Sequence record: MN988561.1
DNA: 64,000 nt
Reading direction: 5' to 3' (one strand)
The notes below the pieces were generated by a model. The model was not told where the DNA came from. It did no database searches and worked only from the letters and a program-made list of their open reading frames with translations. Each line of letters starts with the position of its first letter. Position 1 is the first letter of the stretch. Below are positions 27-62,488 of the stretch, piece after piece. The position numbers and the translations under genes are program-made.

Positions 27-67
27 TAGGTTCACTTCACGTCCTTAAGGGATTCTTCTTTGAAGGG
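27..67 (+). promoter_or_regulatory. Bipartite promoter-like motif copy 1
   Basis: TAGGTTCACTT(27-37)-13nt-GATTCTTCTTTGAAGGG(51-67), followed by GGAG and ATG 83. Confidence 0.8.
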
Positions 68-82
68 TCGAAGGAGCCACCT

Positions 83-355
83 ATGTTTTACACGATCAAG
101 AAGAACTCTGAAAATTCGGACTATAAAATCTCGTCGTTTAACGACTATGAAACTCATCCGAACAATACCTATGAATTGAAAGTCAGAGGTAGAGCAGTCT
201 ATTGCAATTGTCCTGCAAGTAGACATGCTTGTCGTCACGTACAAATGTACTGGCGTACTAAAGAACAGAGTCTCCTTGATAAGCCTAACCTCATCGACTT
301 CACTAACAATAGTGAAATGATTGTCAAACCTATCAAAGCTTTCATCGTGGAGTGA
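83..355 (+). CDS. SWIM-type zinc finger protein
   Basis: YCNCPASRHACRHV fits the CxC-x(n)-CxH SWIM signature, preceded by a beta-rich Y-x-V segment. Confidence 0.75.
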   Translation: MFYTIKKNSENSDYKISSFNDYETHPNNTYELKVRGRAVYCNCPASRHACRHVQMYWRTKEQSLLDKPNLIDFTNNSEMIVKPIKAFIVE

Positions 356-358
356 ATC

Positions 359-583
359 ATGGCTAAGCCTACATGCTGCTGGGTAATCCGTCCTGCTTCC
401 TATAATAAGGAGACTGGTGAATCTGTTAAGGCTATCTATTGTGGTAAGCCTGTACGCTACAAGATTGAAATTGACGACGATATGAATAAACGTCGTAAGT
501 ACAACAATCTTTGTGATACTCATCAGAAAGAGTCTGATGAGATTTCTAAGAATAATCCAGATGATGATTGGGATTTTACCTGA
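359..583 (+). CDS. Hypothetical small Cys-containing protein
   Basis: ORF track; + strand, follows 83..355 by 3 nt. Confidence 0.6.
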   Translation: MAKPTCCWVIRPASYNKETGESVKAIYCGKPVRYKIEIDDDMNKRRKYNNLCDTHQKESDEISKNNPDDDWDFT

Positions 584-607
584 TCATCTACAGTAAAGGA
601 GAGTAGT

Positions 608-1123
608 GTGAAACTTATCGTAGCTGTTAGTCAGAATGATGTCATAGGTACAGAGTTGAATGGTAGACATATCATTCCCTGGAGTCTACCTTCTGATATG
701 GCTAGATTTGCAAGATTGACAAGTAATCATACTCTGATATGTGGAAGGAGGACTTATGAATCTCTACCTTCCACTTTTGAATTAGGTAATCGAGATATTA
801 TCATTCTTACTAGAAAGAATAGAATGAAATCTTCTGATCCTCGTATTCGTTATGCGAGTAGTCGAACTGACGTCATGGAAATGATTCAAGGAGAGGAAGA
901 TCGTACTGCAGTCATTGGAGGATCTGAAGTTTATGCTCAGTTCGTCGATGATTGCGACGAGGTATGCATCACATTCGTTCAAGTAGAAGTTGAATACGGT
1001 ACAGCATATTTTCCATCGAAGTTCTTGAAGTCAAATGGATGGACTCCGATGCTTACTCATATTGAACGTCATGTTGACGATGAGTACGATACTGTATTCC
1101 AACATTACAAGAGGTCGTCATGA
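608..1123 (+). CDS. folA: Dihydrofolate reductase
   Basis: LIVAVSQNDVIG...IPWSLPSDMARF...ICGRRTYESLP...VIGGSEVY...YFP motifs; GTG start with AAGGAG SD. Confidence 0.95.
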   Translation: MKLIVAVSQNDVIGTELNGRHIIPWSLPSDMARFARLTSNHTLICGRRTYESLPSTFELGNRDIIILTRKNRMKSSDPRIRYASSRTDVMEMIQGEEDRTAVIGGSEVYAQFVDDCDEVCITFVQVEVEYGTAYFPSKFLKSNGWTPMLTHIERHVDDEYDTVFQHYKRSS

Positions 1124-1446
1124 AGTATCATTTAGAGATTTTCAGTTTCATCAACGATCGTGATCGTCTGAAACGCGATAATCCTCTACTTCCTGCAGGT
1201 CCTGTACTGAAAGGAGAAACTCTGTACACTATTCGAGATATCGTGTCTGATCGGTATTTCAATTGGTGCTACATTCACCAGCACTCAGCTGAATTCATCA
1301 TGAAGAAGATGATGGAGAACTGGGAAGCTCATCCTGAGATGGTGGAGAGGAATCTGAAGTCGTCATTCTTACCGACTTATCAGAAATCTGTCCACTCCAC
1401 CCGTACACCTAGTGAATTGGAGGCTACGTTCCATGAAACTGATTAA
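1120..1446 (+). CDS. Hypothetical protein
   Basis: ORF track; ATGA overlap with DHFR stop. Confidence 0.6.
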   Translation: MKYHLEIFSFINDRDRLKRDNPLLPAGPVLKGETLYTIRDIVSDRYFNWCYIHQHSAEFIMKKMMENWEAHPEMVERNLKSSFLPTYQKSVHSTRTPSELEATFHETD

Positions 1447-2221
1447 AGGTAAGGACTACTACGATAGTGCTCTTGCATTCGGACGAGATGAGTCTATCAT
1501 CTTCGTACGTAAGAGTGAGACGCTGAGTCGTAAAGATGCCAGAGAGCGTCAACTATCCTATACAGGTATGCATTGGACTCCTACGATTTACATGAAGAAT
1601 CATCGAGGAGATACCATGAAGAATCATCGAGGAGATACCATCAAGAAAGATATGAGCACATGGAAGCATCCTGATGGTCATTCTATAACGATGGATGCGA
1701 TATCTATACTTCTTGCAGGTAAGCTTTATCGTGGACTGAAGACCACCAAGAAGGCTCACTGGACTCATGGTAGTCTATCTGACGAGATTGAGATCTTCTG
1801 GGCTAAGGACTCTTTCACAAGATACATGAACAAGCACGACATGTATCCGTTTCAGTCTGAGTCCTTCACTCATCCGAATTCTACGATTGACATGTACTTC
1901 TTGCCTGACAATCAGACTCAGCAGAAGACGATGGAGTTTATGATCGAACATAAGATGTCGATCATGACAGTTGACGATAGTGTAGGTGAGTGGCACGATC
2001 CTAATGGATATGTCGTCATCGATGGAGATAACCTGAAGGACTACTGCTTGCAGAAGATCGTAGGTCCGTATACGGTTATGCAGGAATTGTCAATGTGGAT
2101 CGGAGGAGTTCTTCCTAAGGATGGACCTCCTATGGTTCAGATCGAAGATGACAAGACCAAGATCAAGAAGCATGGCATGGATCGTTGGTCATTCAGAAAG
2201 ATGGGATCTAAATCCAGATGA
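1433..2221 (+). CDS. Hypothetical protein with an internal 8-aa duplication
   Basis: GGAGG SD at 1419-1423 favours ATG 1433; MKNHRGDT x2. Confidence 0.7.
   Translation: MKLIKGKDYYDSALAFGRDESIIFVRKSETLSRKDARERQLSYTGMHWTPTIYMKNHRGDTMKNHRGDTIKKDMSTWKHPDGHSITMDAISILLAGKLYRGLKTTKKAHWTHGSLSDEIEIFWAKDSFTRYMNKHDMYPFQSESFTHPNSTIDMYFLPDNQTQQKTMEFMIEHKMSIMTVDDSVGEWHDPNGYVVIDGDNLKDYCLQKIVGPYTVMQELSMWIGGVLPKDGPPMVQIEDDKTKIKKHGMDRWSFRKMGSKSR
1592..1639 (+). repeat. Exact 24-bp tandem duplication
   Basis: ATGAAGAATCATCGAGGAGATACC twice (1592-1615, 1616-1639), in frame. Confidence 0.97.
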
Positions 2222-5856: not shown

Positions 5857-6420
5857 ATGATCTTTAGTCTTAGTAATTCAGAATACTTCAGTCTTGCAGA
5901 TGCAGTATGCACAGCTGAAGACTCTCAAGGTCGAGTACCTGTTAACAAGAATATCGTCAGGAAACTTATTACATATCTCGAAGCTGAGAAGTTCTTTAAT
6001 CTCGGTACGGTATGTTGTGTATTGCTACCAGTCGAAGATGGTCTACTATTGATTCGTCGTAATCGTAAGAGTGATCCTGGATTTGGTATGGTAGCACTTC
6101 CTGGTGGATTCCAGAAGGGTAAACAAGCTCAAAATATGTACGATGCTGCAGTAGAAGAAGTCCTAGAAGAGACAGGGATCGTAATTCATAAAGAGAATCT
6201 AAAGCTCGTGTACGGCGATACGGACGAATATGAGCACAATGTTCTATTCTTCTTGCATAATGGTCTACTTGGTAAGGCATCAATGTACATTGAGAAATTC
6301 GTACCTTCAGATGACGAGGTATCGGAGCTAGTCTACATTACTGAGCCTGTTGATACTGCATTCCCAATGCATAGTGAACAGATCAAGAAATTCTTCGAGA
6401 AGAAGTTCGCTCGACGATAG
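5857..6420 (+). CDS. Nudix hydrolase
   Basis: LLLIRR...ALPGGF...AAVEEVLEETG Nudix box. Confidence 0.9.
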   Translation: MIFSLSNSEYFSLADAVCTAEDSQGRVPVNKNIVRKLITYLEAEKFFNLGTVCCVLLPVEDGLLLIRRNRKSDPGFGMVALPGGFQKGKQAQNMYDAAVEEVLEETGIVIHKENLKLVYGDTDEYEHNVLFFLHNGLLGKASMYIEKFVPSDDEVSELVYITEPVDTAFPMHSEQIKKFFEKKFARR

Positions 6421-6458
6421 GTGCAGTTGGGTCCTTCGAAGGCTTCTTCCTTGTAAGG
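6418..6458 (+). promoter_or_regulatory. Bipartite motif copy 2
   Basis: TAGGTGCAGTT-13nt-GCTTCTTCCTTGTAAGG; the TAG is also the Nudix stop codon. Confidence 0.72.
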
Positions 6459-9147: not shown

Positions 9148-9151
9148 CCAC

Positions 9152-10100: not shown

Positions 10101-10142
10101 TAGGTGAACTAGAGCTCCCTAAGAGATTTCTTCTTAGGGAGC
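10101..10142 (+). promoter_or_regulatory. Degenerate motif copy 3, embedded in an 11-bp hairpin
   Basis: TAGGTGAACTA-13nt-GATTTCTTCTT; GCTCCCTAAGA (10114-10124) pairs with TCTTAGGGAGC (10132-10142). Confidence 0.55.
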
Positions 10143-10175: not shown

Positions 10176-11426
10176 ATGAAGAATGCTCATATCGTTATTG
10201 GTGCACAATACGGAGATGAAGGGAAGGGTAGTACTGTTAATCTCCTTGCTCAGAAATATCCAGATGCATTGAATGTCAGGTTCAATGGTGGAGCTCAAGC
10301 AGGACATACTGTGACACTCGAGGATGGTCGTCGTCACGTATTCTCTCACTTTGGATCAGGTAGTCTCCAAGGACTGGATACGTATTTCAACGAGTCTTCC
10401 ATCGTGAATCCTTGGAGATTCAAGGATGAGCATACTGTAATCATGAGTGAATTCGGTCTGAGTCCTCTTGTTTTTGTACATGAGAATGCTCTGGTCACGT
10501 CGCCATACGATATGGCAATCAATCAACTCTGGGAGACTTGCCGTAGTGGAGATCGTCACGGATCCTGCGGTATGGGTATTTATGAGACGATCCTGAGATC
10601 TCGTAATCCTGAATCTCTTGTACGAGTACATGAACTAGTTTATCATGTCTTTGAAGACATCAATGATCGGTACAAAGAATATGCGTATCGTAGACTCCAA
10701 GATGTCAGGGATTTTCATCCTGACTGTGAAGAATTCATTAAGGATACTGAGAAATTTATTGATAGTGAAGATGTTACTCGTCAGTTCTTTCTCGACTATT
10801 CATTCTTCATGTCGATGATTAATGTTGTTAAAGACGATATTAATATCTATCCGCAGTACGATACTGTGATCTTCGAAGGAGCTCAAGGTCTCCAACTCGA
10901 CCAGAATTATGTTGAGTATCTAGGTAATCTGCCTCATGCTACTCCATCCAATCCTGGACTAGGTAACAAGTCACTCCACGATGCATTCGAGAAGTATGGT
11001 CTCACTGAAGACCATATTCACGTGTACTATCTGACGAGATTCTATCAGACTCGTCACGGTAATGGACCATTCGATCGTGAGGTTAATCCTGACGCTCTAG
11101 GCGACATTGTTGATCTCACCAATATCGACAATCCTCATCAAGGATCGATTCGGTATGCTCCACTCAATGTCTTCAGTCTACTCGAAGCAGTCGAGTTCGA
11201 TCTTCAGTACATCGATAACTGCAGACCATATCTTGTGGTCACATGTGTTGACCAAGTTGTCAACGATGAAGTTGTCATCAAAGCATTGCATGATGACAGT
11301 CACGTTAAGATTCCATTCGAGGATTTGAAGATGATCCTACGGGATAACTTTGAATTCATGTACGGTATCTTCTACTCTGACGGAAAATCTATGAAATACG
11401 AGGAACATCTTTATGTCGCAGCATGA
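10176..11426 (+). CDS. purA: Adenylosuccinate synthetase-like protein (divergent PurA clade)
   Basis: GAQYGDEGKG, RFNGGAQAGHT, IFEGAQG, TRHGNGPF; Asp-binding loop and TKLD motif diverged (TNIDNPHQGSIRY; TCVD). Confidence 0.85.
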   Translation: MKNAHIVIGAQYGDEGKGSTVNLLAQKYPDALNVRFNGGAQAGHTVTLEDGRRHVFSHFGSGSLQGLDTYFNESSIVNPWRFKDEHTVIMSEFGLSPLVFVHENALVTSPYDMAINQLWETCRSGDRHGSCGMGIYETILRSRNPESLVRVHELVYHVFEDINDRYKEYAYRRLQDVRDFHPDCEEFIKDTEKFIDSEDVTRQFFLDYSFFMSMINVVKDDINIYPQYDTVIFEGAQGLQLDQNYVEYLGNLPHATPSNPGLGNKSLHDAFEKYGLTEDHIHVYYLTRFYQTRHGNGPFDREVNPDALGDIVDLTNIDNPHQGSIRYAPLNVFSLLEAVEFDLQYIDNCRPYLVVTCVDQVVNDEVVIKALHDDSHVKIPFEDLKMILRDNFEFMYGIFYSDGKSMKYEEHLYVAA

Positions 11427-13904: not shown

Positions 13905-13945
13905 TAGGTTCACTTAGGGTCCTAAGAGGATTCTTCTTTGAAGGG
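13905..13945 (+). promoter_or_regulatory. Bipartite motif copy 4
   Basis: TAGGTTCACTT-13nt-GATTCTTCTTTGAAGGG; TAG is the stop of 13533..13907. Confidence 0.8.
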
Positions 13946-16817: not shown

Positions 16818-17129
16818 ATGTCTAGGACCACGAGACTCTGCAAACCTTATATCATTTACTACAATTACCATAACCTCGGAGATCCTGATCCTCGAGATGC
16901 GTCTCAGAATGGACGTGATGGTAGTAAGTACAAGAGTGCACTGTACGACGATTACATAAAACAACCTGGATGGTCTCGAGATCATTATGTTGGCATGAGT
17001 ATTCGTCGTAGTTGCAAGAAATCTGCTCGTCGTCATCGTCGACGTGAAGATCTTCAGACTGTCTGCAAGGAGATTCTGGAGTACTTTCATGACGACGAAT
17101 TCAGCGTTGATGAGCCTTCCTCTTTGTAA
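16818..17129 (+). CDS. Basic Arg-rich small protein
   Basis: MSRTTR start; RRSCKKSARRHRRRE; TAATG-coupled to basic Cys-containing 16612..16818. Confidence 0.6.
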   Translation: MSRTTRLCKPYIIYYNYHNLGDPDPRDASQNGRDGSKYKSALYDDYIKQPGWSRDHYVGMSIRRSCKKSARRHRRREDLQTVCKEILEYFHDDEFSVDEPSSL

Positions 17130-17146: not shown

Positions 17147-17188
17147 AGGCCTCATTTAGTAGAAATGCTAGATGAGGCCTTTTCTTTT
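17147..17188 (+). terminator. Intrinsic terminator
   Basis: AGGCCTCATTTAG...CTAGATGAGGCCT then TTTCTTTT. Confidence 0.85.
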
Positions 17189-17205
17189 ACCTTATTGGAG
17201 CATCA

Positions 17206-17781
17206 ATGAATTACAACATTGACACGACTGAAGCAGAGCTACGAGAGCAGCTTCAGCAGAAGAATCGTGAGTTAGATCTGAAGTCACCTGATCTTCCCGA
17301 TTTCACAATCAGCAAGAACATGAAGAAAGATCGGGATGATCTCAAGAAGTATCTTTACTTCTTGATCAGTAATCAATCCGATTTTGTCAAGACACTTTAC
17401 AAATACAGTGACAAGACTATGGAGATGACAGTCTCTTCAGACGAGTGTGGATGGAGACCTAAGTCACATATCTCTCGTGTCGTATGTAACTTGAATCTGA
17501 AGACTCTTAAAGTCACGTACGAAGCATATGAGACTTCATTTGGTACTCTCAATTCATATGCGAATCGTCCAGTTGAACATAAACTTATATTCAAGTACAA
17601 GTTTATTATTCCTCCATCTGCACTAATGAAGCTTACTGAAAGATTCGAGAATGCTGCATGTGAGTGTATGAAGAAGCTCGAGATCGATCGTGAGATTGCT
17701 AAGAAGAAGCAAGATGAGAAGGATCGTCTACTCGGACTGATTGACTTTGAGGTAGAGCAACAATTAAATCGTAAGTCGTAG
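17206..17781 (+). CDS. Hypothetical protein
   Basis: GGAG SD; ends at the TAG of motif copy 5. Confidence 0.7.
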   Translation: MNYNIDTTEAELREQLQQKNRELDLKSPDLPDFTISKNMKKDRDDLKKYLYFLISNQSDFVKTLYKYSDKTMEMTVSSDECGWRPKSHISRVVCNLNLKTLKVTYEAYETSFGTLNSYANRPVEHKLIFKYKFIIPPSALMKLTERFENAACECMKKLEIDREIAKKKQDEKDRLLGLIDFEVEQQLNRKS

Positions 17782-17818
17782 GTGCAGTTAGAGTTCTCGA
17801 GGGATTCTTCTTTGAAGG
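17779..17818 (+). promoter_or_regulatory. Bipartite motif copy 5
   Basis: TAGGTGCAGTT-13nt-GATTCTTCTTTGAAGG. Confidence 0.8.
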
Positions 17819-17848
17819 CTCCGAAGGTCGGAGTTCAAGGAGAATGAT

Positions 17849-20945: not shown

Positions 20946-20986
20946 TGGGTGCAGTTGTGGGCTCAGAAGGATTCTTCTTTGAAGGG
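20946..20986 (+). promoter_or_regulatory. Bipartite motif copy 6 with upstream A-tracts
   Basis: TGGGTGCAGTT-13nt-GATTCTTCTTTGAAGGG; A-rich 20907-20944. Confidence 0.78.
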
Positions 20987-21401: not shown

Positions 21402-21425
21402 TCCTGACCAGGACTAAACAATATC

Positions 21426-21463
21426 GCCTAGTGGAGAGCAATCTTCACTAGGCCTTTTCTTTT
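21426..21463 (+). terminator. Intrinsic terminator
   Basis: GCCTAGTGGAGA-GCAA-TCTTCACTAGGC then CTTTTCTTTT. Confidence 0.85.
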
Positions 21464-21958
21464 ATCTAAACGTGACATATGATATTTCTTGAAGATACTG
21501 ACATTGATACAGTTAATACAACATCCACTCACTTTGAGAAACTGGAAGGACCATTCTTTCAGATCACTCACAATACTGCATATACTCGTGCGACTTATAC
21601 GATTAAGAGAGCTCTCATTATCAAGAAGAGTCTTGAAGAGAAGAAGGTCGATAAGAGACCATTTCACATTCGCATGAAAGATCATCCTAGTAGCAGGAAA
21701 CATAAATAATGGCATATGACTTGAATATCCTCGACGACGGTGAGACAGAGATCGTCGCTAATGTCATGGGAAATCTAGGTCTCGAAGAGGGAGACGATGA
21801 TGATCATGAGAAATTCGTCAAGTTTCTAGAGACTGCTGACGAATTCGACATCCTGGATAAGTATCTCACATGGATCGGTATCATCGGATTCACTAACGAG
21901 ATCCTCGATGTGATCGAGAAGATCAGAGAAGCTAAGATTAATACTGAGGACGAATCTA

Positions 21959-22915: not shown

Positions 22916-23325
22916 AGATGATTATAAATAATGTCCTTCAGTCCTTAGATAAGATACCTGAAGCAGTATCTGAGTATCTGCTAGTTGATTTGAATGTATT
23001 TCATGGCAAAGGATATCTTGACGTAGAAAGGATGATGAATGACTATCTACGTCAAGCTAAGTATCAACGTAAGTTGCTAGTCATCACGATTCCTGCAGCT
23101 GATCTCAAAGTCAGATGGAAGATTGATGCTTACAATGCTCGAGATTATGAGATCCCTATGTGGACAGCACCGTATTCTCGATCTGTGTATCAGTTAGCTC
23201 ATATCGTTGTAGCTTATGGTGATAGGATTGTTCTCATCAAAGGACGACCTGATCGTAGGCATGATGAGAGAATCAAGTATGAAATTCATCAGCAAATAAA
23301 GATGCTTCAAGATAATTCTAATTAA
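22912..23325 (+). CDS. Hypothetical protein
   Basis: ATGA-coupled to polX. Confidence 0.6.
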   Translation: MKMIINNVLQSLDKIPEAVSEYLLVDLNVFHGKGYLDVERMMNDYLRQAKYQRKLLVITIPAADLKVRWKIDAYNARDYEIPMWTAPYSRSVYQLAHIVVAYGDRIVLIKGRPDRRHDERIKYEIHQQIKMLQDNSN

Positions 23326-23343
23326 GCCAATTAAGCGGTCAGG

Positions 23344-23379
23344 AGCCTTCCTCGTTGTGAGGTTCCCTATGGAGACTAT
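23344..23379 (+). promoter_or_regulatory. Second conserved leader element, copy A
   Basis: AGCCTTCCTCGTTGTGAGG...TATGGAGACTA, near-identical to 52517-52550. Confidence 0.6.
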
Positions 23380-26153: not shown

Positions 26154-26606
26154 ATGAATCGCAGATTATTTTTATCAGCATTAGCGTCTACCTTATTACT
26201 ATCCTCGACTCCTGCATTCTCTATTCTAGAAAACGATATTGCTGAAGTACCTCCTCTCATGAAGTTAAGGTACCGTCAAATCGTTAATCGTATTAGAGAT
26301 GCTATCCTCACATCCTACCTCGATACAGAGGAAGAGTCAGATAAGACTCAGAAGCGTAAGTATATTGCGAGTTACGCTACCAATCTCCTGAACTACTACA
26401 AAGACAATCGTATCATCCACGACTACGGAGCACTTGTCTACAATACAGTTCAATACGGTACTTTCACTCCGATGAGTGAGGAGACTGTAGTATCAATCTG
26501 TGTTGAGCTCGTGAAAGATGCTAAAGTCTACATGATATTCGCTCCGTACTATGTTGAAAGAGATCCTGATCTCGTTTTGGCTGAGCAATATACCTCGACA
26601 CAATAG
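26154..26606 (+). CDS. Tat-signal protein with a tail-sheath C-terminal-like segment
   Basis: MNRRLFLSALASTLLLSSTPAFS; RQIVNRIRDAI...LLNYYKDNRIIHDY resembles the sheath C-terminal domain pattern. Confidence 0.5.
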   Translation: MNRRLFLSALASTLLLSSTPAFSILENDIAEVPPLMKLRYRQIVNRIRDAILTSYLDTEEESDKTQKRKYIASYATNLLNYYKDNRIIHDYGALVYNTVQYGTFTPMSEETVVSICVELVKDAKVYMIFAPYYVERDPDLVLAEQYTSTQ

Positions 26607-26641
26607 GTTCAGTTAGCGTCCTGAAGGGATTCTTCTTTGAG
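26604..26641 (+). promoter_or_regulatory. Bipartite motif copy 7
   Basis: TAGGTTCAGTT-13nt-GATTCTTCTTTGAG; TAG is the stop of the upstream ORF. Confidence 0.8.
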
Positions 26642-35510: not shown

Positions 35511-36215
35511 ATGCGTAAGTATAATATTGCACTGGCAGCTGCATACTCGCTCTCTGCCGTACTCTTTTCCTCAACTGCATCTGCTGCTACATGTGGTGGT
35601 CAGGCATGGTCATGGAAATCCTTCCTGAGTGGTGGATGCTCACCATCAGGTGTATCCAATCCTGGAGATAACAAGCCTCAGCCTGGAGTACGTGGATCGG
35701 TACGTACTGTCCCGAGTGGATTCGCTCCTTCGAATGGATCATCTCCGTCGACATCTCCATCGACTGGCGTCTCTGATCCTGGTACCGATAATCCTGGTGG
35801 CGATGATCATGGAAATGATAATCCCGGACATGACAATCCGGGTGGTGATCACAATGACGATGGTCACAACGATAATGGCGACAATGGCAACCATGACAAC
35901 GATGATAATGGGAACCATAACGGTGACGACAATGGTCACAATAATGATCATGGAGATCATGATGGTGACAATGACTCTGGCAACAATGGTCATGACAATG
36001 ATCATAACGGTCCATCTGGCGATCATAACAATGATGGCCATAACGACAATGGCCAGGATAATGGTCACGGTCAGGATCAGTCTGGTAACAACGATAATGG
36101 CGGCGATCAGCCTTCTAATAATGAAGGCTCGAACAATGATCACGACAACAACCATAATGACAATGGTCACGGTAATGACGATAATGGTGGCAAGGGACCA
36201 GGCAAAGGTAAGTAG
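35511..36215 (+). CDS. Secreted Gly/His/Asp/Asn-rich low-complexity protein
   Basis: Sec signal MRKYNIALAAAYSLSAVLFSSTASA; two Cys; about 140 aa of GHDN-type imperfect repeats. Confidence 0.8.
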   Translation: MRKYNIALAAAYSLSAVLFSSTASAATCGGQAWSWKSFLSGGCSPSGVSNPGDNKPQPGVRGSVRTVPSGFAPSNGSSPSTSPSTGVSDPGTDNPGGDDHGNDNPGHDNPGGDHNDDGHNDNGDNGNHDNDDNGNHNGDDNGHNNDHGDHDGDNDSGNNGHDNDHNGPSGDHNNDGHNDNGQDNGHGQDQSGNNDNGGDQPSNNEGSNNDHDNNHNDNGHGNDDNGGKGPGKGK

Positions 36216-36232: not shown

Positions 36233-36271
36233 GTGGGAGGTATCAGAAATGGTATCTCCCACTTTTATTTT
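36233..36271 (+). terminator. Intrinsic terminator
   Basis: GTGGGAGGTATCA-GAAA-TGGTATCTCCCAC then TTTTATTTT. Confidence 0.88.
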
Positions 36272-36923
36272 GTCTGGAGGTCATATGAGAATAATAATGG
36301 TGGTAGTATACGTCCTCATATCACTAGGATTCTATACTACGCTTGGTACGATTGATCCGTCTAAGCAGACTGAGGCAGTTATCCGATCACTACTCTGGCC
36401 ATTGGAATTTGGTAGACAGATTGGTGAGAAATCGAAGGAGTATCGAAATGTGGATGGAAACGATTAAAGCTATCGGAATGTTTATCATACTACCGATAGT
36501 TCTACTCATGGTAGGTGCAGTGATAATTCAGAGTATACCTCAAGCTGATGCTGCATCAGGGTCTGTTCAGATTCTCACAGTACCTGGTCAGTCGAATATC
36601 GTCTGCATGACCAGAGGTGGTAATACTCTTTCATGCGTGAAGGTCTAATCAATGCAAGACGTTACTAAGACTAACATGTGGAAGATCAAGGCTATGAAGT
36701 TGCAAGCTGATATCCTGATGATGGACATGTTCAAACAATTGATCGAGACTCAGGATGAATTTGGTAATCCTATTCGAATCATCCAACCTCAGATTCTCAC
36801 GACCTACGAACATTTTACGATCATAGGTGTTGATGAGAAAGCACTATTAGAAGAAGGACGTGAAGAGCCTATCATGCTTTATCATGACTGGTACATGACG
36901 TATGAAGTTAAGGATAGAATTCT

Positions 36924-39427: not shown

Positions 39428-40238
39428 GGATTCTATTAATGTTTTATCAACAAATACCTATGGGAGCAGGAGATCACTCATCTGCTCAATGTTTCAGACT
39501 GACATCTCTGTTGCACGATACTCTAAGTGACATCTCAACTCTTCAACAAGCTGGTGGAAGAGATCCTTCATTTGATAACGATTATGATCTCCGTATCAAA
39601 GTAGCTGCATGTGAGATCTTTCTGAAGTTGACAGGTTACAAAATCAGTGACATTAAATTGTTAGATCTATTGAAGGAATACGAATAATGTCTGAGAATGT
39701 ATTTGACTACGGATTCATGGTACCTCTGAAAGAGAAGATGACCGATGATGATCGATATGATCTCTCTGAGAGACTCTGGAATGAGAAGACTGGAATCCAT
39801 ATTAATCATGAAGGTACGATAATCTACTCTGCTATTCGAGGAAACGAGTATGGGATTAGATTCATTCAGACGTCTGAGATGGATTCCTCTGCATTCATGG
39901 ATTCGATTCCTGACTACGTACCTGAGGTCGACGATACGGAGATTCGAGGATACTCGTGCTACTGGTACAATGGATCTGATAGCGATATGGACTGCATGAC
40001 TTTGGAAAGATATAGGAGTTACAATAATGACTCAGAAACGTGATCGACTAAAGATGACTCTCCGAGAAGAAGTAGCATTCGTCTTCGGAGGAGTAATGGC
40101 TATCAATCCTGAGTGGTACAAACAAGCACTCGAGATGATAGCGAAGAATCAGAATGTATCTGTCGATGAGGTGAAGAAAGCCGTCGAGAGCCTTCCTTCT
40201 GAGGACTTCGACTGAATCAATTTAAAGGAGAGGGTGAC

Positions 40239-42759: not shown

Positions 42760-43035
42760 TCCGAGGACGTAAGAGTATCAAGAATGCAGCGACTGATGAG
42801 TGGATGAAAGAATGGGGTAGTCTGGAAGGACCTGGATATCCTGTCTGGAAGTTGTACGACATCCCTGAGATCATGAGTACTGCTAGTCGAATCATGGACG
42901 CTACTCGTAAGGAGTACGTCAAGAAATCCAAGAGTAACGATCTACCACAAGTATCATATATGCTGCAAGCTAATGATGAAGGTGTGTATGTCGAGTATGA
43001 GATCCGATAGTAAAGAAAATAAAGTCGTAGCAAAA

Positions 43036-43076
43036 TGGGGTCGATCGACGTCTTCGAGAGATTCTTCTTTGGAGGG
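43036..43076 (+). promoter_or_regulatory. Motif copy 11 (degenerate upstream box) with A-tracts
   Basis: TGGGGTCGATC-13nt-GATTCTTCTTTGGAGGG; AAAGAAAATAAA and CAAAA upstream. Confidence 0.68.
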
Positions 43077-43122
43077 TCGCTGGTCGGTCCTTCTAGAGAA
43101 TTGTCTTTGATTGGAGATTGTG

Positions 43123-43731
43123 ATGTCGGTGCTGCTGGAATTTGAGGGTCCTTCGATTGGATCCAAGAAGAATTGGTTGACTCTGGATCTTGAGACTGAA
43201 AAGATCTTCGGATCTTTCTCATGGGAATCTGGTGAGAAGAATGGTCGTCGATGGCGTCCCTATGCTTGTGGAATTGGCCACCAATCGGATCGTCTCCTGG
43301 AAATCAAAGTCTTCTCTTCGTTCGATGAGCAAGAAATGGCCGACTGGATCTCCGAGTCCTTGGTGATTCTCGGTGGAAATGTCCAGGATGTGGTCTTTCA
43401 GAATTCGAGAAATCGGTTCGATGAAATGGTCTGCTCCGGACGGTTCATAAATGCTCGTCGTCCTCCAACTCGTCTCCCTGGATCCTGGCCAATTGTCTCG
43501 ACTGATCCTGTGATGGTCTGGAAGAAAACTCCTCGGACTGATCGGATTCCAATTCCAAGAAATGAGGTGGATGGGATTGGTGGTTCTGCTGATCTCGTCC
43601 GTCGTGGAGATCTGGATCCTCTCCGCCATTGTGGTCGGGATGTTCTTGAGAATCTCTGGAATCTCGAGGATTGTCCTTCTCTTCCTCCTGAGTGGGTCGA
43701 CTTCTGGAAATCTCCATTCTCTGCTTCCTGA
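43123..43731 (+). CDS. Hypothetical protein encoded by an almost TA-free gene
   Basis: GGAG SD at 43113 then ATG 43123; only 2 TA dinucleotides in 609 nt; a single Tyr. Confidence 0.75.
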   Translation: MSVLLEFEGPSIGSKKNWLTLDLETEKIFGSFSWESGEKNGRRWRPYACGIGHQSDRLLEIKVFSSFDEQEMADWISESLVILGGNVQDVVFQNSRNRFDEMVCSGRFINARRPPTRLPGSWPIVSTDPVMVWKKTPRTDRIPIPRNEVDGIGGSADLVRRGDLDPLRHCGRDVLENLWNLEDCPSLPPEWVDFWKSPFSAS

Positions 43732-43742
43732 TTCTGAGTCCT

Positions 43743-43772
43743 GGGCCATGACTTAAAACTGGTCCCTATTTT
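43743..43772 (+). terminator. Conserved-loop hairpin / terminator
   Basis: GGGCCA-TGACTTAAAAC-TGGTCCC then TATTTT. Confidence 0.6.
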
Positions 43773-43791
43773 CATAGCTAAAGGTAAGATC

Positions 43792-44287: not shown

Positions 44288-44328
44288 TAGGTTCACTTAG
44301 CCTCCTCGAGGGATTCTTCTTTAGAGGG
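44288..44328 (+). promoter_or_regulatory. Bipartite motif copy 12
   Basis: TAGGTTCACTT-13nt-GATTCTTCTTTAGAGGG. Confidence 0.8.
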
Positions 44329-45331: not shown

Positions 45332-45368
45332 GGGTAGTATGCCGAGAGGTATGCTACCCTATTCTTTT
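45332..45368 (+). terminator. Intrinsic terminator with a GNRA loop
   Basis: GGGTAGTATGCC-GAGA-GGTATGCTACCC then TATTCTTTT. Confidence 0.82.
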
Positions 45369-46064
45369 GTCCATATGGAGATGACTACAATGAGAATGTC
45401 CAGTATTAAGCATGAGATGAAATTGTTCATCGTCAAGTCAGCTGATGGTACTCAGACTCTTGTCGAGAATGATGGAGATGGTCCTGAGTTCATCTTCACA
45501 GAAGATACAAAGATCTCTTCTGGAGACGATACTCGTCAGATCGTAGTATCGTCGAACAAGGGTGATCTCCAGATGGTATGTGGATCATTCTTGACGGATG
45601 AAGAACGATCCAATGTCAAGATTATCGAGACCACAGGATCGATCAGGATCTATGTCGCTCCAGGAGATCTTCTCTGATGTCGTATGAAGGATACGGAGAG
45701 TACATCTGCCTGAGTGGTCACTATGTGAAGGCTCGAGACATCTATGATCATCCTGAGACTGAATGTGCTATCTGCAAGTCAGGGATGAAGTACTACCACT
45801 CAGTTGATGTAACCAATGGTTACGATGAGACGAGTGCGATGTCATGTGATGCTCCCAAGATCGTGATCGGATCTGATGACTGGTGGCAGACTGATCACTA
45901 CGACAATCGATATGCTCAGAGGATCCATCTGTATGGGATTCCTGAGGGTATGAATCCATGGATCGATTTACAATCGTCAGAATCCTAACATGTTGAGGGG
46001 TACAGGATTCTGATGGTCGACCTGAGCATGTCGTTATAAAGGCTCAATCTTTTATTGTAAGAGA

Positions 46065-46107
46065 TAGGTGCACTTGAGGTCGTAGAAGGATTCTTCTTCA
46101 GGAAGGG
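46065..46107 (+). promoter_or_regulatory. Bipartite motif copy 13
   Basis: TAGGTGCACTT-13nt-GATTCTTCTTCAGGAAGGG. Confidence 0.8.
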
Positions 46108-46581: not shown

Positions 46582-46610
46582 GAGCCATGAGGTTAAACTG
46601 GCTCCATTTC
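46582..46610 (+). terminator. Conserved-loop hairpin / terminator
   Basis: GAGCCA-TGAGGTTAAAC-TGGCTC then CATTTC. Confidence 0.55.
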
Positions 46611-46640
46611 TTGTATCTGAACGTAATAGTTACTACGAGA

Positions 46641-46682
46641 TAGGTTCAGTTAGGGTCCTAAGAGGATTCTTCCTTAGGAGGG
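46641..46682 (+). promoter_or_regulatory. Bipartite motif copy 14
   Basis: TAGGTTCAGTT-13nt-GATTCTTCCTTAGGAGGG. Confidence 0.8.
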
Positions 46683-51806: not shown

Positions 51807-52516
51807 ACATAATCATCGTCGAGGTACGAAATCAACAACTCGACATACTAAAGAATCGGTCGAGAGCAGACTGTACACTCGAGCAGATATCGGTGGATTC
51901 AATAAGTTCTTGAATCGATTCATTACACCTAACTGTGGACTTGAAGTGATTGAGAGAGGTAAGGTAGGACTAGCTCACTCTAAAGCTGGTGCTAAGAAGT
52001 ACGTCAGATCTCGTACTCGATTCCATGAGAATGCTGCTACTCGTCAATTAGCTAAGGAAATCAGTGATGACTGAAGTCGTAATGAATACCACATACTACA
52101 CGATGATGGATGAGGACAAGAAGATGGTCCTCACTGACTATCAAGGTCGACGTATGTTCATGTTAATGAGTGAGCTCATCCAACGTAATATCGAGGACAT
52201 GATTGTCCTTGGTGATCAGGATAGCTTGTACGAAGAGTCCAAGCATTTCTCAGGCATTAAGATCATCATCGTACCTGTCGCTACAACAATGAGGATTCAA
52301 GTATGAGTGAACCTACCTACGCGATCCACGTCCTGGATACTCTGAAGTCATCTTATCATTGTTCATATAATGAGGCTATGGTAAGAGGTCAGACGATCAG
52401 TCGTAGTCGAGGTCATACGAAGATTGATGATCGTACCATAGCATTCTTCGACAAGGAAGGATCTCTGAAGGTACTCGTTCAACGAGAATAACAATTCAGC
52501 TTATTCCAGTGGGATA

Positions 52517-52550
52517 AGCCTTCCTAGTTGTGAAGGAATATGGAGACTAC
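52517..52550 (+). promoter_or_regulatory. Second conserved leader element, copy B
   Basis: AGCCTTCCTAGTTGTGAAGG...TATGGAGACTA, near-identical to 23344-23379. Confidence 0.6.
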
Positions 52551-55747: not shown

Positions 55748-58096
55748 AATATTTCCAATGCGATCTCTCCCAAGGTACTGGACGTACTACTGCTTACATT
55801 GAAGAGCGTGGTGCTAAGGTAGGAGCATTCGTAGAAGTGAAGGACGAGAACTTTAATGGACTCTGGAGAGTCGATCAGGTCTCAGATCATGGAGTAGAAG
55901 GTGAACATCTTCGTGACCTCCAGAAGAACAATCGTAACATCTTTGGCTCTATTGCTCCGAGGACTTAATCAATGAACGATCGTGGCAAGGCACTCTGGAA
56001 AATTCTAGAGGATGCAAGAGATAATACCGAACAACGTCTCAGGGAACATGGATTCGCAGGTAACTTGATTGCTATCCGTGCTAAGAAATGTCTCGTCAAG
56101 GGATGTATGAACGAGTCTGATCAAGGTACATTCATAGGAGATCTCTGCTTACCTTGCCACGATATGATTACTACTGGTAAGATTCATCATACGAATCCTA
56201 CTTTTATCGGTGATCTTCAACGTCAGATAGGAAAGTATGACAAGATTGCTAAATTTCATCAACAATTCATGGAGGTAATGAAGGATGAGTGATCGATTTG
56301 TTGCACTCAGACATGTTCTGAACGCTATGATCAACAATGAGAATACGGACTGGTGTGTCAGTGAACGTAGTGCAAATACTGCTATGAAACTGATCGATGT
56401 TCTGGAATTTGCTAATGCTGAAGCACCTTTGATCTTACCTGAGGATGGTCTAGTCGTTCTCACATACACAGATCGTACTAAGAAATACTTCATCCGATGT
56501 GATGAGGATATAGATATTCAGGTACTGGAGAAGTCAAATGTCAGATCAAACTGAAGAAAAGCTGGTAGAACGATCCGAGTACTACACAGTAGAAGTACGT
56601 ACTTGGCATCTTCATGAAGTTGGATTACAACGTGAGGTCGATGCAGATGTATGGAATGATTGCATCTGGCATTTACTATTCGACTCACCTGGTAGTGTTT
56701 ATACTCAGAAGAGTGAAGCTATCGACGTACGTAATCGAATCGTTAATGAGGCTCACATTCCCTCAGAGGATATTAGAGTTACTCGAGTCATCCATGAAGT
56801 ATTGGATATTGAATGAAAATCTCATCCATGAAACCTCTGATGAGTACAGAGGATCTTAAAGATTACAATTACTCTATCGCAGCTATTACTACTGAAAGTG
56901 TAATGGTGATGGCAGACCTATTTCAATTTCCTCCATCTGAAGATGATATCATTGACTTCATCAAGAAGGTCGAAGAAGATCCTGATATGGTTCAGTACGG
57001 TGAACTCACTGTAGGTCTAGGTGACCAAGAGTTTACTGAATGGGTACGATCAGTTGTCAGTGATCGTTTCGATGAAGTCACGATGGAAGATCATAAACGA
57101 TTGAACTAACTTAGGTCACTAGAGCCTTCCTAGTTACTAGCGACCTCATTGGATATTGTGATGACAAATATTAAAGGATATCTACCAGGATTCCTGATTC
57201 TAGCCGTATGTTTAACGATTACTTTCGTAGCTAAACATTATTATAATCCTGCTCCTGTGCAGGTATTTGATTATACGAAGAAGGAGTCATCGAATGGATG
57301 CTCATAGTCATCTCGAAATGATCATACAAGAAATCATTTATGAGCATGGAGGATTCATCAAGTCAGTTAATCTCGTATCTCAAGTCTATGGTCGACTGTC
57401 AACGACTTTTAGTAAGGACATCATTACAGAAGAGATGTTCAAGGAACTTACTGAAATCAATCTTGTCGAGAAGTTGAATCAGATGGTCACTGACAAGAAA
57501 CTAGGTGAGATTGAGTACTCAGATATGAACTTAGCTTATCGTATCAAATCTGTTTACTATAATCCTGAGATTACTAAAGATGTTAGGATTGTCCAGTGAG
57601 CGATCAGAGTAAGAATCTGAAATGGCCTGAGGATCATGACCCTAACAAATTTCTATTCTCTGTGCATGGAGTATTTGCACTAGCACCTGATGGTTATATC
57701 CAGAGGAAATATAATGGTATCAAAACTCGTGACTCTGATAGCCTTGTGCATGATCATCTATGTGATAGTGATGGTAAGGTAGACATGATGAAGCTGAAGC
57801 AACTTCTGATCGAAGCACGTCAGCACGGTTATGCAACTGCTAAGAATGAAGTCACGTATGCTATTACACGTACGACATTCAAAGGAGTACCAGGACTTGA
57901 TACAGAGTGATAATCGTAGATTAGCTCAGTCTGGAGATCAGTCTCATCGAGTATGGGTCATTATTTATGAAGATGCAGATATGAGTACTGCAGTCTTTAC
58001 AGGACCTGATGCAGAGAAGGAGGCTCGTGAGCAGTATGAACGTAGTAAGATCGGATGGAATTGTTATCTGATGTGTACTGCATATGAGGAAGCATA

Positions 58097-58348
58097 ATGC
58101 CTGCATCATATTTAAATGATACTATCCATCGAAAGAGTTATCATCGAGTAGCTCAACTCCGTGCTACTCATGGATACACTCAGAAACAAGTAGCTGAAGC
58201 TATCAACATGAGTCGTGACCATCTTGCATCTATCGAGTCGGGTCGTTGTTGGATGAGTACTAAATCACTCGTCAATCTCTCAAGATTCTATGGTGTCTCG
58301 ACTGACTATCTACTAGGACTCTCTGATGTGAGGACTAGAGCAGCATGA
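58097..58348 (+). CDS. XRE-family HTH transcriptional regulator
   Basis: LRATHGYTQKQVAEAINMSRDHLASIESGR...LSRFYGVSTDYLLG. Confidence 0.92.
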   Translation: MPASYLNDTIHRKSYHRVAQLRATHGYTQKQVAEAINMSRDHLASIESGRCWMSTKSLVNLSRFYGVSTDYLLGLSDVRTRAA

Positions 58349-58746: not shown

Positions 58747-58784
58747 AGGCCTACTAGGAGAGATCTTAGTAGGCCTTTTCTTTT
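58747..58784 (+). terminator. Intrinsic terminator
   Basis: AGGCCTACTAG / TTAGTAGGCCT stem then TTTCTTTT, directly before motif copy 15. Confidence 0.85.
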
Positions 58785-58792: not shown

Positions 58793-58833
58793 TAGGTTCA
58801 CTTAAGGTCCTGGAGGGATTCTTCTTTGAAGGG
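58793..58833 (+). promoter_or_regulatory. Bipartite motif copy 15
   Basis: TAGGTTCACTT-13nt-GATTCTTCTTTGAAGGG. Confidence 0.82.
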
Positions 58834-59582
58834 AGCGTTGTGCTCCGAGTCTTTAAGGAGAATTGTCTTGAGGTACAAGTTCGAGCATCAGTCCGTAATT
58901 CCTGAATCCGACTTTGATCCGGATGGACTGGACATTATCTGGATCGACGATACCTATGCGTCGGCAGATAGCTTGGATACGATTTCCAAGTACATGTGCT
59001 GCGAAGTCGATGAGATCCAGCAGTATACTTCTGTCGAGGAGATCTGAGATGGCTAAGCTTGATCGTGCGAAATGGCCTACTCTGGCTAAAGCATTTGATG
59101 AATATGGACATTCGTATAAGTTCGACGATATGTTCGATGCGAAGGTACGTAGCGACAGTAACTACGTAGTCCTCTGCTGGAAGATCGACGAGGATTTCTA
59201 TGAGATGGCTGATCTCGCTAGTGATGGGAATGGTAATTGGGAGATGCAGAACGACATGTTCGATGGCATCAGTCTCAAGCAGTGGAAGTCCCTGAAGATC
59301 ACTCCTCAGTGTGACTGGTTTACTTACGATGGGGACGGTAACTAAGATGATTCTTCTCGTTAGAATGTTCTTATTCTCAGTTCGGATCTATGAGTTCTTC
59401 ACTGGAGACAAGTCAGGTCTCGAAGTCCTCATCAAGGTACGTGAGGATAAGTGGGACAAGTACAAATCGGATCTACTGAAGGATGGATTCGTCTTTCATG
59501 AGATCGATGGAACAATTCGTGTGACCAATGTAAAGTTCAATGGACGATACGTTGAGGTCATCGCTACGAGGGAGGATGCAGC

Positions 59583-60752: not shown

Positions 60753-61030
60753 GAGACGTGGATGAGCATGAAATTTCAGGAAGGTATGCACTTCAAATTG
60801 GAAGGAGCTACTCTGAAAGGTAAGAATAGGATTCGAGATAACGGATCTGAATGGCAAGTCGTCAGTGTCAAGGATGGAGAAGTCTTGTTCGAATCTGTTC
60901 TGACAAGCTATCTGAAATGGCATCCTCTCAATGAAGAATCTGACTTCATTGTAGTTGAGAGAATGCAGGATGTCGAAGATGTGAATGACTCGATCGAAAT
61001 CGAAGGTCATTTCCTATAAGGAGTAACGAA

Positions 61031-61651
61031 ATGCAATTCGAAGTCAATCTGAATAACTATCCTGTTATGCGTAAGGCATTTCAGTTCATCGAGGTAGACA
61101 ATGGTGCAGGCATTATTCCTGGAGTACCTCTGAAGAATTCATATGTCGTTGATTTGAGTGATGAGTCTTCACTCGAAGAGATGTACGGTATGCAGTCATT
61201 CTCAGATAATGGTGCAGGTGCTCTCATGAATGCTGTCGAGGCCACTCTTGCTCAGATGAGTGATGATGAACTTCTTACATTCTGCACAGGTGGTGATCAT
61301 GAAGTCAAGATGATCGCCGAGAAGTACGAGTATGGCGCTATCGCTAGTGAGTTTCTGGATGCATGGTTCGAAGGTCACTTCGATGAGACTCCAAGATTCA
61401 CATGGCATCAGGTCTGGTACTTCACTAAAGTTTATCCTGAGACTGTTACTCCGGATGAAGCATATGAAGCATGGGTCAAGGAGAATCCTGACCCTAATGG
61501 CATGACAACCTACAACGAGGAAATATGGGAGGGTGATGAGTCCTGGGTTAAGTCAGTTTGTAGACTACTTCGAGTTGAACTGACTGATTACATTCCACCA
61601 CCGAAGGATGAAGGTGATGAACCGATCAATACTGAGAAGGTTAACCAGTGA
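61031..61651 (+). CDS. Acidic hypothetical protein
   Basis: TAAGGAG SD; 206 aa. Confidence 0.7.
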   Translation: MQFEVNLNNYPVMRKAFQFIEVDNGAGIIPGVPLKNSYVVDLSDESSLEEMYGMQSFSDNGAGALMNAVEATLAQMSDDELLTFCTGGDHEVKMIAEKYEYGAIASEFLDAWFEGHFDETPRFTWHQVWYFTKVYPETVTPDEAYEAWVKENPDPNGMTTYNEEIWEGDESWVKSVCRLLRVELTDYIPPPKDEGDEPINTEKVNQ

Positions 61652-61845
61652 GGAGTACGAAATATCTGGTCCAGAGAAATACTGGATGAGATTGTACATA
61701 TTGCCGATAGCTTCTATCTATTTTATATCGGCAATACTTCTATTTCCATTCTATGGACCGTCTATTTTCAGGACGGTCCAGGATATGATCAAGAGTCACT
61801 TCAATAGTTAGTAACGAGTTGATGCGTTTGAGTATTTGAATAAGT

Positions 61846-61884
61846 GGCTCTAGGCGAATCATTGTGCCTAGAGCCTTCCTTTTT
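61846..61884 (+). terminator. Intrinsic terminator
   Basis: GGCTCTAGGC / GCCTAGAGCC perfect 10-bp stem then TTCCTTTTT. Confidence 0.82.
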
Positions 61885-61909
61885 ATTAGAATAACATTGA
61901 AAGTTTAAA

Positions 61910-62428
61910 ATGCAGTCTTTTGGATATACAATACTAGCTCTCGTAGTAATTCTTATTCTCTACAAGATCATCAGATCACTTATCGTTCATGAGCAGAAAG
62001 CATCTGAATCAACCATTGACAATGGATACAATCTTCCGATCAAAGAAGCAGTTGATACGTCGATCAGTACGAGGACTACGACGTCTACTGCTATACGTCG
62101 TCAACCTGAGCATCGTAGACAGGAAGTCAAGTCTGAGAAACGTCAGTCATATGACAATGATACGGTTGCCACTTCATACGATGATAATTCGGATACTGTA
62201 ACTGCTGCAGTTATCTCAACGATCCTCTCGATTGAATCCAACAATTCTAGCTCGTCTCATTCAGATCATTCAAGTAGCTCGTCGTCTTCTCACTCAGATA
62301 CCTCGAGTAGTTGGTCGTCATCTCACTCGGATAGTTCATCTTCTCACTCATCGTCTTACGACTCAGGATCGTCCAGCTCATACGACTCTGGTAGTAGCAC
62401 GTCAGACTCTGGTGGTGGAGGATGGTAG
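61910..62428 (+). CDS. Membrane-anchored protein with a Ser/Gly-rich tail
   Basis: N-terminal TM (TILALVVILILYKII); C-terminal SSSYDSGSSTSDSGGGGW. Confidence 0.75.
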   Translation: MQSFGYTILALVVILILYKIIRSLIVHEQKASESTIDNGYNLPIKEAVDTSISTRTTTSTAIRRQPEHRRQEVKSEKRQSYDNDTVATSYDDNSDTVTAAVISTILSIESNNSSSSHSDHSSSSSSSHSDTSSSWSSSHSDSSSSHSSSYDSGSSSSYDSGSSTSDSGGGGW

Positions 62429-62447
62429 GCGAATTTATTTTAACGAA

Positions 62448-62488
62448 TAGGTTCACTTGAGGTCGTTAAGGGATTCTTCTCTGAAGGG
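62448..62488 (+). promoter_or_regulatory. Bipartite motif copy 16
   Basis: TAGGTTCACTT-13nt-GATTCTTCTCTGAAGGG. Confidence 0.82.

Follow-up and report, generated by a model that had tools for sequence, protein, structure and literature searches.

Among the described systems that bear on the present locus are the PeSL cassettes of the T4-like phages RB49/phi1, PST and nt-1, in which the promoters are near-consensus sigma70 sequences, TTGACA-N17-TATAAT or close variants (PMC2839356, PMC4122927). The jumbo phages phiKZ and AR9 encode two copies of a complete set of split beta and beta' subunits, and their promoters are short AT-rich or TATG-type sequences or template-strand uracil motifs (PMC7598289). 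Here we analyse the first 64,000 bases of Rhizobium phage RHph_TM61 (MN988561.1; TM61 below), a stretch that we refer to as the window, together with the rest of the genome, and describe a repeated motif unit of 41 bases with two boxes, which we call class I to tell it from a second family, class II. The layout and setting of class I appear closest to PeSL cassettes and to T4 middle promoters, although the defining sigma70 and MotA features of those systems are not found in it. The gp28 middle promoters of Bacillus phage SPO1, with the non-host consensus AGGAGA-N17-TTTNTTT, also resemble it in having two boxes, sigma70-family spacing, a pyrimidine-rich -10 element, a non-host sequence and a link to a temporal class switch, but they differ in that no sigma-family protein is detectable in TM61 and in that class I appears to serve the earliest genes rather than a middle class. 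From the evidence set out below we consider it likely that class I is a genus-specific phage promoter heading early small-gene units plus three later operons. No publication describing the motif was found.

The window is identical in sequence to bases 1–64000 of TM61, a phage of R. etli NXC12 assigned to the Kleczkowskaviridae (Cuauhnahuacvirus) with a genome of 202,964 bp. All genes from position 1 to about 159.5 kb lie on the + strand, and the structural genes (159.6–202.2 kb) on the - strand; the non-coding fraction of the sequence is only 5–7%. The window covers a region of about 170 small, mostly unannotated genes that starts at a divergent non-coding region, and class I copy 27 marks the start of the + strand gene array. 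The GenBank record is labelled a 'partial genome' and contains 13 short runs of N between 72603 and 193077, none of them within the window.

An initial annotation of the window had reported sixteen copies of the motif. A pattern search with TAGGTKCASTT-N13-GATTCTTCYTT (up to 3 mismatches, both strands, expectation from shuffles) finds 14 of these at exactly the positions reported, all on the + strand, as against 0.01 expected, and a position weight matrix made from the 14 matches adds the two degenerate copies, 10101 and 43036, and no others in the window (Table 1). Scanned over the whole 202,964-bp genome, the matrix gives 19 copies, three of which lie beyond the window (genome positions 107907, 142736 and 154290). 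All are on the + strand, none is on the - strand or inside a gene, and no site in the genome scores between 5 and 20 bits.

Over 50 columns the alignment of the 19 copies has no gaps, so that the 13-nt distance between the boxes is indeed invariant, as had been proposed; the spacer is itself partly conserved, with 0.4–1.0 bit at each of positions 12–23 and the consensus ARGGTCCTnRAG. Measured between the core hexamers, GGTKCA (positions 3–8) and GATTCT (positions 25–30) are 16 bp apart in 19/19 copies, with no indel. GATTCT is present in 17 of the 19, the exceptions being copy 6418 (GCTTCT) and copy 10101 (GATTTC), and it keeps the A and T of a -10 hexamer at positions 2 and 6. Box 1 (AGGTKCASTT) is a near-palindrome, and together with the GGTCC of the spacer it makes a direct repeat with a period of 11 bp. 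It is centred about 30 nt before a purine run. In this respect the geometry of class I fits that of the MotA/AsiA-dependent middle promoters of T4 (sigma appropriation), where an activator-type box centred near -30 takes the place of the -35 element and lies 13 bp before a -10-like hexamer with A-11 and T-7, and which are likewise interspersed among pre-replicative genes. The sequences are unrelated, notwithstanding the 13-bp gap that they have in common: TAGGTKCASTT stands against the TGCTT box of T4, and GATTCT against TAnnnT. Neither MotA nor AsiA has a Pfam match among 239 + strand and three - strand open reading frames (ORFs) of TM61.

By the annotation, every copy is intergenic or overlaps no more than the last codons of the upstream gene. 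At six copies (6418, 13905, 17779, 26604, 31743 and 107907) the TAG of the motif is the annotated upstream stop codon, five of which had been recognised before. Each copy is followed by its T-run, by a purine run (GAAGGG, AGGAAG or AGAGGG), and later by a Shine-Dalgarno site and an ORF; the predicted leaders, from T-run to ORF, vary from 21 to 94 nt in length. Copies 46641 and 46065 have a GAGAATTGTCTTTAAGGAGAAATG ribosome-site block in common. Many near-identical cassettes in one orientation, set in the gaps between small early ORFans and made of a promoter, then a Shine-Dalgarno site and a start codon, among variable small ORFs, are also what is seen with PeSL.

Table 1. Positions of motif copies and associated features (window coordinates unless marked genome)
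Feature	Position	Strand	Remarks
Class I copy 1	27–67	+	first + strand signal past the divergent region; EVB64_001 ATG at 83
Class I copy	6418–6458	+	GCTTCT variant; TAG = EVB64_013 stop; next gene starts 6504
Class I copy	10101–10141	+	degenerate, score 20; ahead of purA-like gene at 10176
Class I copy	13905–13945	+	TAG = EVB64_026 stop; next gene starts 13981
Class I copy	17779–17819	+	TAG = EVB64_037 stop; followed by perfect 8-bp 5' hairpin; next gene 17849
Class I copy	20946–20986	+	TGGG variant; longest predicted leader, 94 nt; next gene 21075
Class I copy	26604–26644	+	TAG = EVB64_059 stop; next gene starts 26675
Class I copy	29524–29564	+	covers final 13 nt of EVB64_067; next gene starts 29611
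Class I copy	31743–31783	+	TAG = EVB64_073 stop; next gene starts 31800 (GTG)
Class I copy	34500–34540	+	next gene at 34573
Class I copy	43036–43076	+	degenerate, score 32; at head of variable cassette
Class I copy	44288–44328	+	followed by 12-bp 5' hairpin (-15 kcal/mol); next gene starts 44366
Class I copy	46065–46105	+	Y65/TM40 insertion ends exactly at its 5' edge
Class I copy	46641–46681	+	preceded by moderate hairpin with T-rich tail (46582–46616)
Class I copy	58793–58833	+	top score, 61 bits; directly 3' of terminator 58747–58776
Class I copy	62448–62488	+	next gene at 62522
Strong intrinsic terminator	58747–58776	+	13-bp stem, TTTTCTTTT tail; 17 nt 5' of copy 58793
Promoter-gene-terminator module	43010–43781	+	copy 43036, EVB64_108, hairpin with T-run
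Class II copies, window	17090–17129, 23321–23360, 40166–40205, 52494–52533, 57100–57139, 61849–61888		
Class II copies, beyond window	genome 64–150 kb; 160746; 202719	- at 160746; + at 202719	202719 is upstream of class I copy 27
beta' gene	genome 155268–158651		outside window
DksA/TraR-type zinc finger gene	genome 102243–102455		transcription-related
PC4-like single-strand-binding coactivator gene	genome 69691–69903		transcription-related
Cro-like helix-turn-helix (HTH) protein	58097–58348		

The surroundings of the copies resemble PeSL cassettes in part only. The initial annotation had placed terminators or hairpins directly before copies 46065, 46641 and 58793. The one ahead of 58793 is strong, and that ahead of 46641 (46582) is moderate to weak, a 6-bp stem with an 11-nt loop and a T-rich tail that was read by eye and is in neither terminator scan listing; inspection of the gap sequence gave no convincing terminator at 46023. 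Outside the window copy 142736 also follows a strong intrinsic terminator, the distance at this copy and at 58793 being 15–17 nt. An upstream terminator is thus found at 2–4 of the 19 copies (strong at 58793 and 142736, moderate at 46641) and is absent at most. Some class I copies lie directly behind a terminator stem-loop as some PeSL copies do, but unlike in PeSL the regular stem-loop is downstream, in the leader. In 18/19 copies a stem-loop begins 1–6 nt past the T-run, and the stem sequences differ among copies. The 32 nt past the T-run have a mean folding energy of -8.1 kcal/mol, compared with -3.75 for random genomic 32-mers and -4.8 for shuffles; none of 20,000 resampled means was as low as -8.1 kcal/mol, and the signal is gone 10 nt further downstream. 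With a fixed starting point and a variable sequence, this stem-loop looks like the 5'-terminal hairpin of an mRNA, which suggests that the start of transcription is likely to fall on the purine run. That the start codon lies at variable distances speaks against a translational operator.

Comparison with relatives indicates that both boxes are maintained. In the sister phage Y65, which is about 96% identical to TM61, all 14 copies of its first 50 kb are at orthologous sites. Between the two phages there are 0/154 substitutions in box 1 and 4/182 in box 2, all four at the two degenerate Y positions, as against differences at 10.7% of aligned positions in the 40 nt upstream of the motif. A diverged relative is represented by a 1.2-kb contig from run ERR1198915, where a homologue of EVB64_323, the gene at the head of the beta' operon, is 63% identical. 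It carries TGGGGTAACTA-N13-GATTCTTCGTT 79 nt upstream of this homologue, at the orthologous site and with unchanged N13 spacing; in a spacer region that has otherwise diverged, no perfect run is longer than GGAGGGATTCTT.

Outside this lineage the class I motif is absent from the IMG/VR, metagenome and bacterial sequences scanned. Exact-pattern scans of IMG/VR gave no match. The metagenome scan gave 16 single matches and no contig with two, which is at chance level (estimated 15–30 by chance), and one-genome-per-species bacterial contigs gave 8 single matches, in unrelated taxa and none in Rhizobium, again at chance level. No Rhizobium genome contains a match to the strict motif. A protein search of IMG/VR with the phage beta' was negative, EVB64_116 has no homologue outside the genus, and the metagenome neighbours found through a NUDIX gene have only that gene in common and lack the motif.

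Differences in gene content among the sister phages also involve some of the copies. The module 43010–43781 (Table 1) is present in TM61 and Y65; TM30 and TM40 have a 186-nt small gene instead, and Y65 has both. Y65 and TM40 carry an additional small ORF on an insertion whose end coincides exactly with the 5' edge of copy 46065. The module resembles a moron, as a unit of promoter, gene and terminator between conserved neighbours that is present or absent among sister phages; it differs from morons, which are found mainly in temperate phages and have host-type promoters, in using the phage's own repeated motif. Class I is associated with gene presence or absence among close relatives, as PeSL is. 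In all, 2–3 indel junctions among sister phages adjoin motif copies, and because most other TM61/Y65 breakpoints are away from them, a recombination role like that of PeSL is only a possibility. The analogy with PeSL drawn in the initial annotation therefore holds for architecture and genomic setting. It does not extend to a near-consensus sigma70 promoter, which class I lacks, nor to a T4-like phage, which TM61 is not, and for recombination it rests on those two or three junctions.

The same junctions bear on another explanation, that class I is mainly a DNA site at which a phage regulator acts (as with a repressor or a shut-off operator) or at which gene cassettes are shuffled by PeSL-like recombination, with the true promoters elsewhere. 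The near-palindromic box 1 and its 11-bp-period direct repeat are typical of protein binding sites, and the window encodes a Cro-like HTH protein. However, intergenic indels are expected near any intergenic signal, most of those separating TM61 and Y65 are distant from the copies, and the 16 motif-bearing intergenic gaps contain no other recurrent promoter-like signal. The strict orientation and the fixed distance to the -10-like box favour initiation over binding alone, and we regard this explanation as very unlikely.

Two further explanations depend on structure within the motif itself. The initial annotation had suggested a small hairpin resembling the promoters of the N4 virion RNA polymerase, and this suggestion is not upheld. 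RNAalifold finds no consensus structure on the motif copies (-1.2 kcal/mol, 0 compensatory pairs), and the candidate TTCTTC/GAAGGG stem is paired in 87% of cells, compared with 86% for column shuffles, the observed value being reached by 177 of 500 shuffles. The pairing is thus accounted for by a pyrimidine run beside a purine run with no selected helix, which removes the main support both for an N4-type hairpin and for an RNA element, and we reject a hairpin of either kind within the motif. The conserved 5–7 bp stem, 3-nt loop and fixed position that characterise the N4 virion RNA polymerase promoters have no counterpart in class I. An N4-type promoter, a hairpin extruded from supercoiled DNA for an injected virion RNA polymerase, would be in keeping with the lack of host-type promoters and with the short CTTC/GAAG inverted repeat across the predicted start site. 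This repeat is explained by base composition, though, and neither a consensus stem nor an N4-like, crAss-like or YonO-like polymerase was detected; a giant N4-like virion RNA polymerase gene is found neither by annotation nor by Pfam or PHROGs. A 754-amino-acid (aa) ORF considered as a YonO-like polymerase was rejected, as it has no Pfam or PHROG match and no DxDGD catalytic motif. An N4-type promoter is in our view extremely improbable.

It might also be supposed that class I acts as an element of longer transcripts, in processing, in control of stability or translation, or in anti-termination, with no start site of its own. That the conserved pyrimidine and purine runs can pair, that windows over the 3' half of the motif fold well, and that six copies overlap the upstream stop codon, so that transcription from upstream is conceivable, would be consistent with such a role. 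The shuffle-level pairing and missing consensus fold described above argue the other way, as do the lack of any Rfam match in the window, the variable distance of 21 to 94 nt to the ribosome site, and the conservation of the upstream box in sequence rather than in pairing. Copies right behind strong terminators, moreover, would rarely be transcribed from upstream. We give this possibility very little credence.

If class I is a promoter, as we favour, its sequence is not one that the host is known to use. Consensus sequences are available for R. etli SigA (cTTGAc-N16-cnATAA), RpoH and RpoE4 (PMC4167512), and class I matches none of them. The statement of the initial annotation that neither box resembles sigma70 elements agrees with a sigma70 scan, which places no site at any class I copy. 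Between 40 and 60 kb, matches to the E. coli-type sigma70 consensus number 29 against 45 in shuffles, that is, fewer; SigA-like CTTGAC matches, which were not each set against the annotation, are evenly divided between the strands (14 on +, 18 on -), and the divergent non-coding region has no convincing host-type promoter. Host-type (SigA, RpoH, RpoE) promoters are not enriched in the regions scanned.

A promoter read by the host could still take the form of a site for an unmodified alternative (extracytoplasmic function) sigma factor of R. etli, or for SigA together with GcrA at the CcrM methylation site GATTC. Several observations fit this. The earliest genes, behind copy 27, need a reader that exists ahead of phage proteins; a copy stands ahead of the beta' operon, so that a requirement for beta' is unlikely; the GGTKCA-N16-GATTCT geometry is that of the sigma70 family; and GATTC lies within the -10-like box of 17/19 copies. 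Against it stand the mismatch with the R. etli consensus sequences (PMC4167512) and the bacterial scans, in which no Rhizobium genome has the strict motif and the 8 single matches fall in unrelated taxa. GANTC is moreover common across the phage (1428 sites genome-wide, observed/expected 1.94), so that its presence does not set the motif apart, and the class II motif has no GANTC. On balance we consider a host-read promoter unlikely.

The initial annotation had proposed a phage-encoded sigma factor, activator or RNA polymerase as the reader, to be sought in the rest of the genome. Our search (Pfam on the 239 + strand and three - strand ORFs plus 16 selected proteins, and NCBIfam and PHROGs on candidates) turned up only a beta' subunit, a DksA/TraR zinc finger, PC4 and one HTH_3 protein. 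Of what had been proposed, the genome does carry a polymerase subunit, beta'. This protein is of bacterial type and full length (1127 aa, E ~1e-152 to cellular beta'); with its NADFDGD and N-terminal zinc motif intact, it is apparently active. In having a phage-encoded homologue of a large subunit of the cellular polymerase, no recognisable sigma, and phage-specific motifs in place of host-type ones, TM61 is comparable to phiKZ and AR9, although its beta' is single, unsplit and bacterial-type, with no beta. No alpha, beta or sigma gene is detectable in the phage. One class I copy, 154290, is found some 1 kb ahead of the beta' gene. Since this copy precedes the beta' operon, recognition of class I probably does not require beta', although autoregulation is possible.

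At the head of the beta' operon, EVB64_323 (218 aa) has weak similarity (tblastn E = 2e-7) to a protein of Vibrio phage Va2 whose gene stands two genes ahead of the lone beta' there. A sigma-like nature of this protein is not supported: the AlphaFold2 model has a predicted local distance difference test score of 54 with only residues ~120–213 confident, and a Foldseek search of the model against the PDB gave nothing below E=1. By its sequence and position it is a candidate beta' partner, nothing more. Lone or split beta' genes also occur in Vibrio phage Va2, in E. coli phages EP_H11 and IME392, and in others; we found no paper on the lone beta' arrangement in phages.

The second repeated family, class II, has the sequence ATTnAGCGAA-N14-GCCTTCCTT (core AGCGAA-N14-GCCTTCC) and about 25 copies on the + strand and 1 on the - strand, with fixed spacing. 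They occur mainly at 52–150 kb, ahead of replication, nucleotide-metabolism and tRNA genes, and some sit within hairpins or terminators, for example 61849–61888. Class II is probably a second (middle) promoter class; with class I it would make up two promoter-like families whose distributions complement each other, in keeping with a temporal program. Its core resembles the box tAACCTTGCT of phage Va2 (AACCTTGCT among Va2 boxes), and Va2 has a repeated intergenic box AGGCnGTT...ACCTC-N4-ACCTTGCT, of which the + strand has at least 27 copies, frequently accompanied by a covarying hairpin. EP_H11 carries repeated intergenic boxes of its own (AAAGGCTGTTAA, AAGCCCGTTC and AAAGCCCGTTCTTTTGGG). That these two beta' carriers have boxes of their own means that subunit replacement could be a general, undescribed phage strategy. 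Taken to its limit, this would mean that TM61 has no host-type promoters at all, and that class I (early) and class II (middle) are read by a hybrid polymerase, with the phage beta' in place of the host subunit, and by a specificity factor that has escaped recognition. EVB64_323, conserved beside beta' in Va2, is one candidate for that factor, and for the earliest class I promoters a factor would have to arrive with the virion. We hold this extended scheme to be quite unlikely.

The preferred reading, that class I is a phage promoter, draws on its strand, placement, geometry, conservation, modularity and leader hairpins, on the lack of enrichment of host-type promoters, on the phage's possession of a beta' of its own and on the existence of the class II family; on these computational grounds we agree with the initial annotation that it is a phage-specific promoter cassette. 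A number of points weigh against it. Folding is about as good in windows that take in the motif's 3' half as in the downstream window, so that part of the folding signal comes from the pyrimidine run adjoining the purine run. Just one diverged relative with one copy was found, and the genomes within the genus are 96–99% identical, which limits footprinting. As Pfam, NCBIfam and PHROGs gave no sigma, no MotA/AsiA-like factor, no beta and no single-subunit RNA polymerase, the reader of the motif is hypothetical; and if the motif drives the earliest genes, this reader is needed before phage proteins are made and would have to be a host factor or one delivered with the virion, neither of which was found. 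The literature holds no transcript 5' ends, methylome or biochemistry for TM61 or its genus.

With these points in mind, we infer that RNA polymerase starts at the motif, and a plausible course of events is as follows. GGTKCA would serve as a -35-like box and GATTCT, beyond a 16-bp and partly conserved spacer, as a -10-like box with its A at position 2 and T at 6; a T-rich discriminator would follow, and initiation would take place on the purine run (GAAGGG or AGGAAG) about 6–8 nt further. The transcript would then open with the variable stem-loop, probably mRNA-stabilising, followed by the Shine-Dalgarno site and the ORF. This geometry would be that of a sigma70-family holoenzyme. As the sequence fits no known Rhizobium sigma, recognition would be conferred by a phage-specified factor, which may be an undetected sigma-like protein, an activator that binds the upstream near-palindrome, or a polymerase modified by the phage beta'. 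Class I would thus act like a phage promoter of sigma type or activator type, and to judge from its sequence it belongs to no named family.

Other features of the sequence were noted along the way. The divergent non-coding region (0.8 kb, AT-rich; genome 202235–202964 plus window 1–26) closes with a long TTATTATA/TAATAAT repeat run immediately ahead of class I copy 27, and it could be an origin or packaging region. In the - strand structural-gene gaps (e.g. genome 194520–194610) neither motif class is found; some of these gaps hold TATAAATA-like sequences, such as ATATAAATAG upstream of EVB64_370, which recall T4-type late promoters. Strong intrinsic terminators with no motif after them occur at 17150–17190, 21425–21465, 27285–27328, 36233–36273 and 45332–45370, 20–30 nt before the next start codon, and the genes downstream of these would need read-through or anti-termination. 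The terminator at 36233–36263 falls within the annotated start of EVB64_087.

Some annotations in the window may need revision. The conserved ribosome-site block after copy 58793 (AAGGAGAATTGTC-TTG) also precedes the GTG start at 31800, and the sequence suggests that EVB64_158 starts with the TTG at 58914 (58914–59345, 143 aa), not with the annotated ATG at 59049. The purA-like gene (10176–11426) scores 99 bits with PurA, where the cut-off is 402, and 36 bits with PurZ, where it is 300, and appears to be a divergent family member. The idea that it is a PurZ of a Z-genome (2-aminoadenine) pathway is unsupported, as it falls far under both cut-offs; in sister-phage RefSeq records it is called '2-aminooxy adenylosuccinate synthetase'. 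The gene annotated as transcription termination factor Rho (35511–36215) has no Pfam, NCBIfam or PHROG match, and that annotation looks unsupported.

Nothing has been known so far about transcription in the Kleczkowskaviridae, and the paper behind these genomes makes no mention of promoters or RNA polymerase. The copies of class I provide a ready map of 19 predicted transcription units, and the cassette layout helps account for the gain and loss of small genes in these phages. With no match to a host sigma, and with a lone beta' that has neither sigma nor beta beside it, the reader may prove to be a hybrid host-phage polymerase or a specificity factor of a new kind, and if the lone beta' is part of the mechanism the finding would be considerably more interesting. 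The 41-base motif offers a defined DNA probe for a protein that redirects Rhizobium RNA polymerase, and a compact, orthogonal promoter that works in infected rhizobia alone would be of use in both phage and rhizobial genetics.

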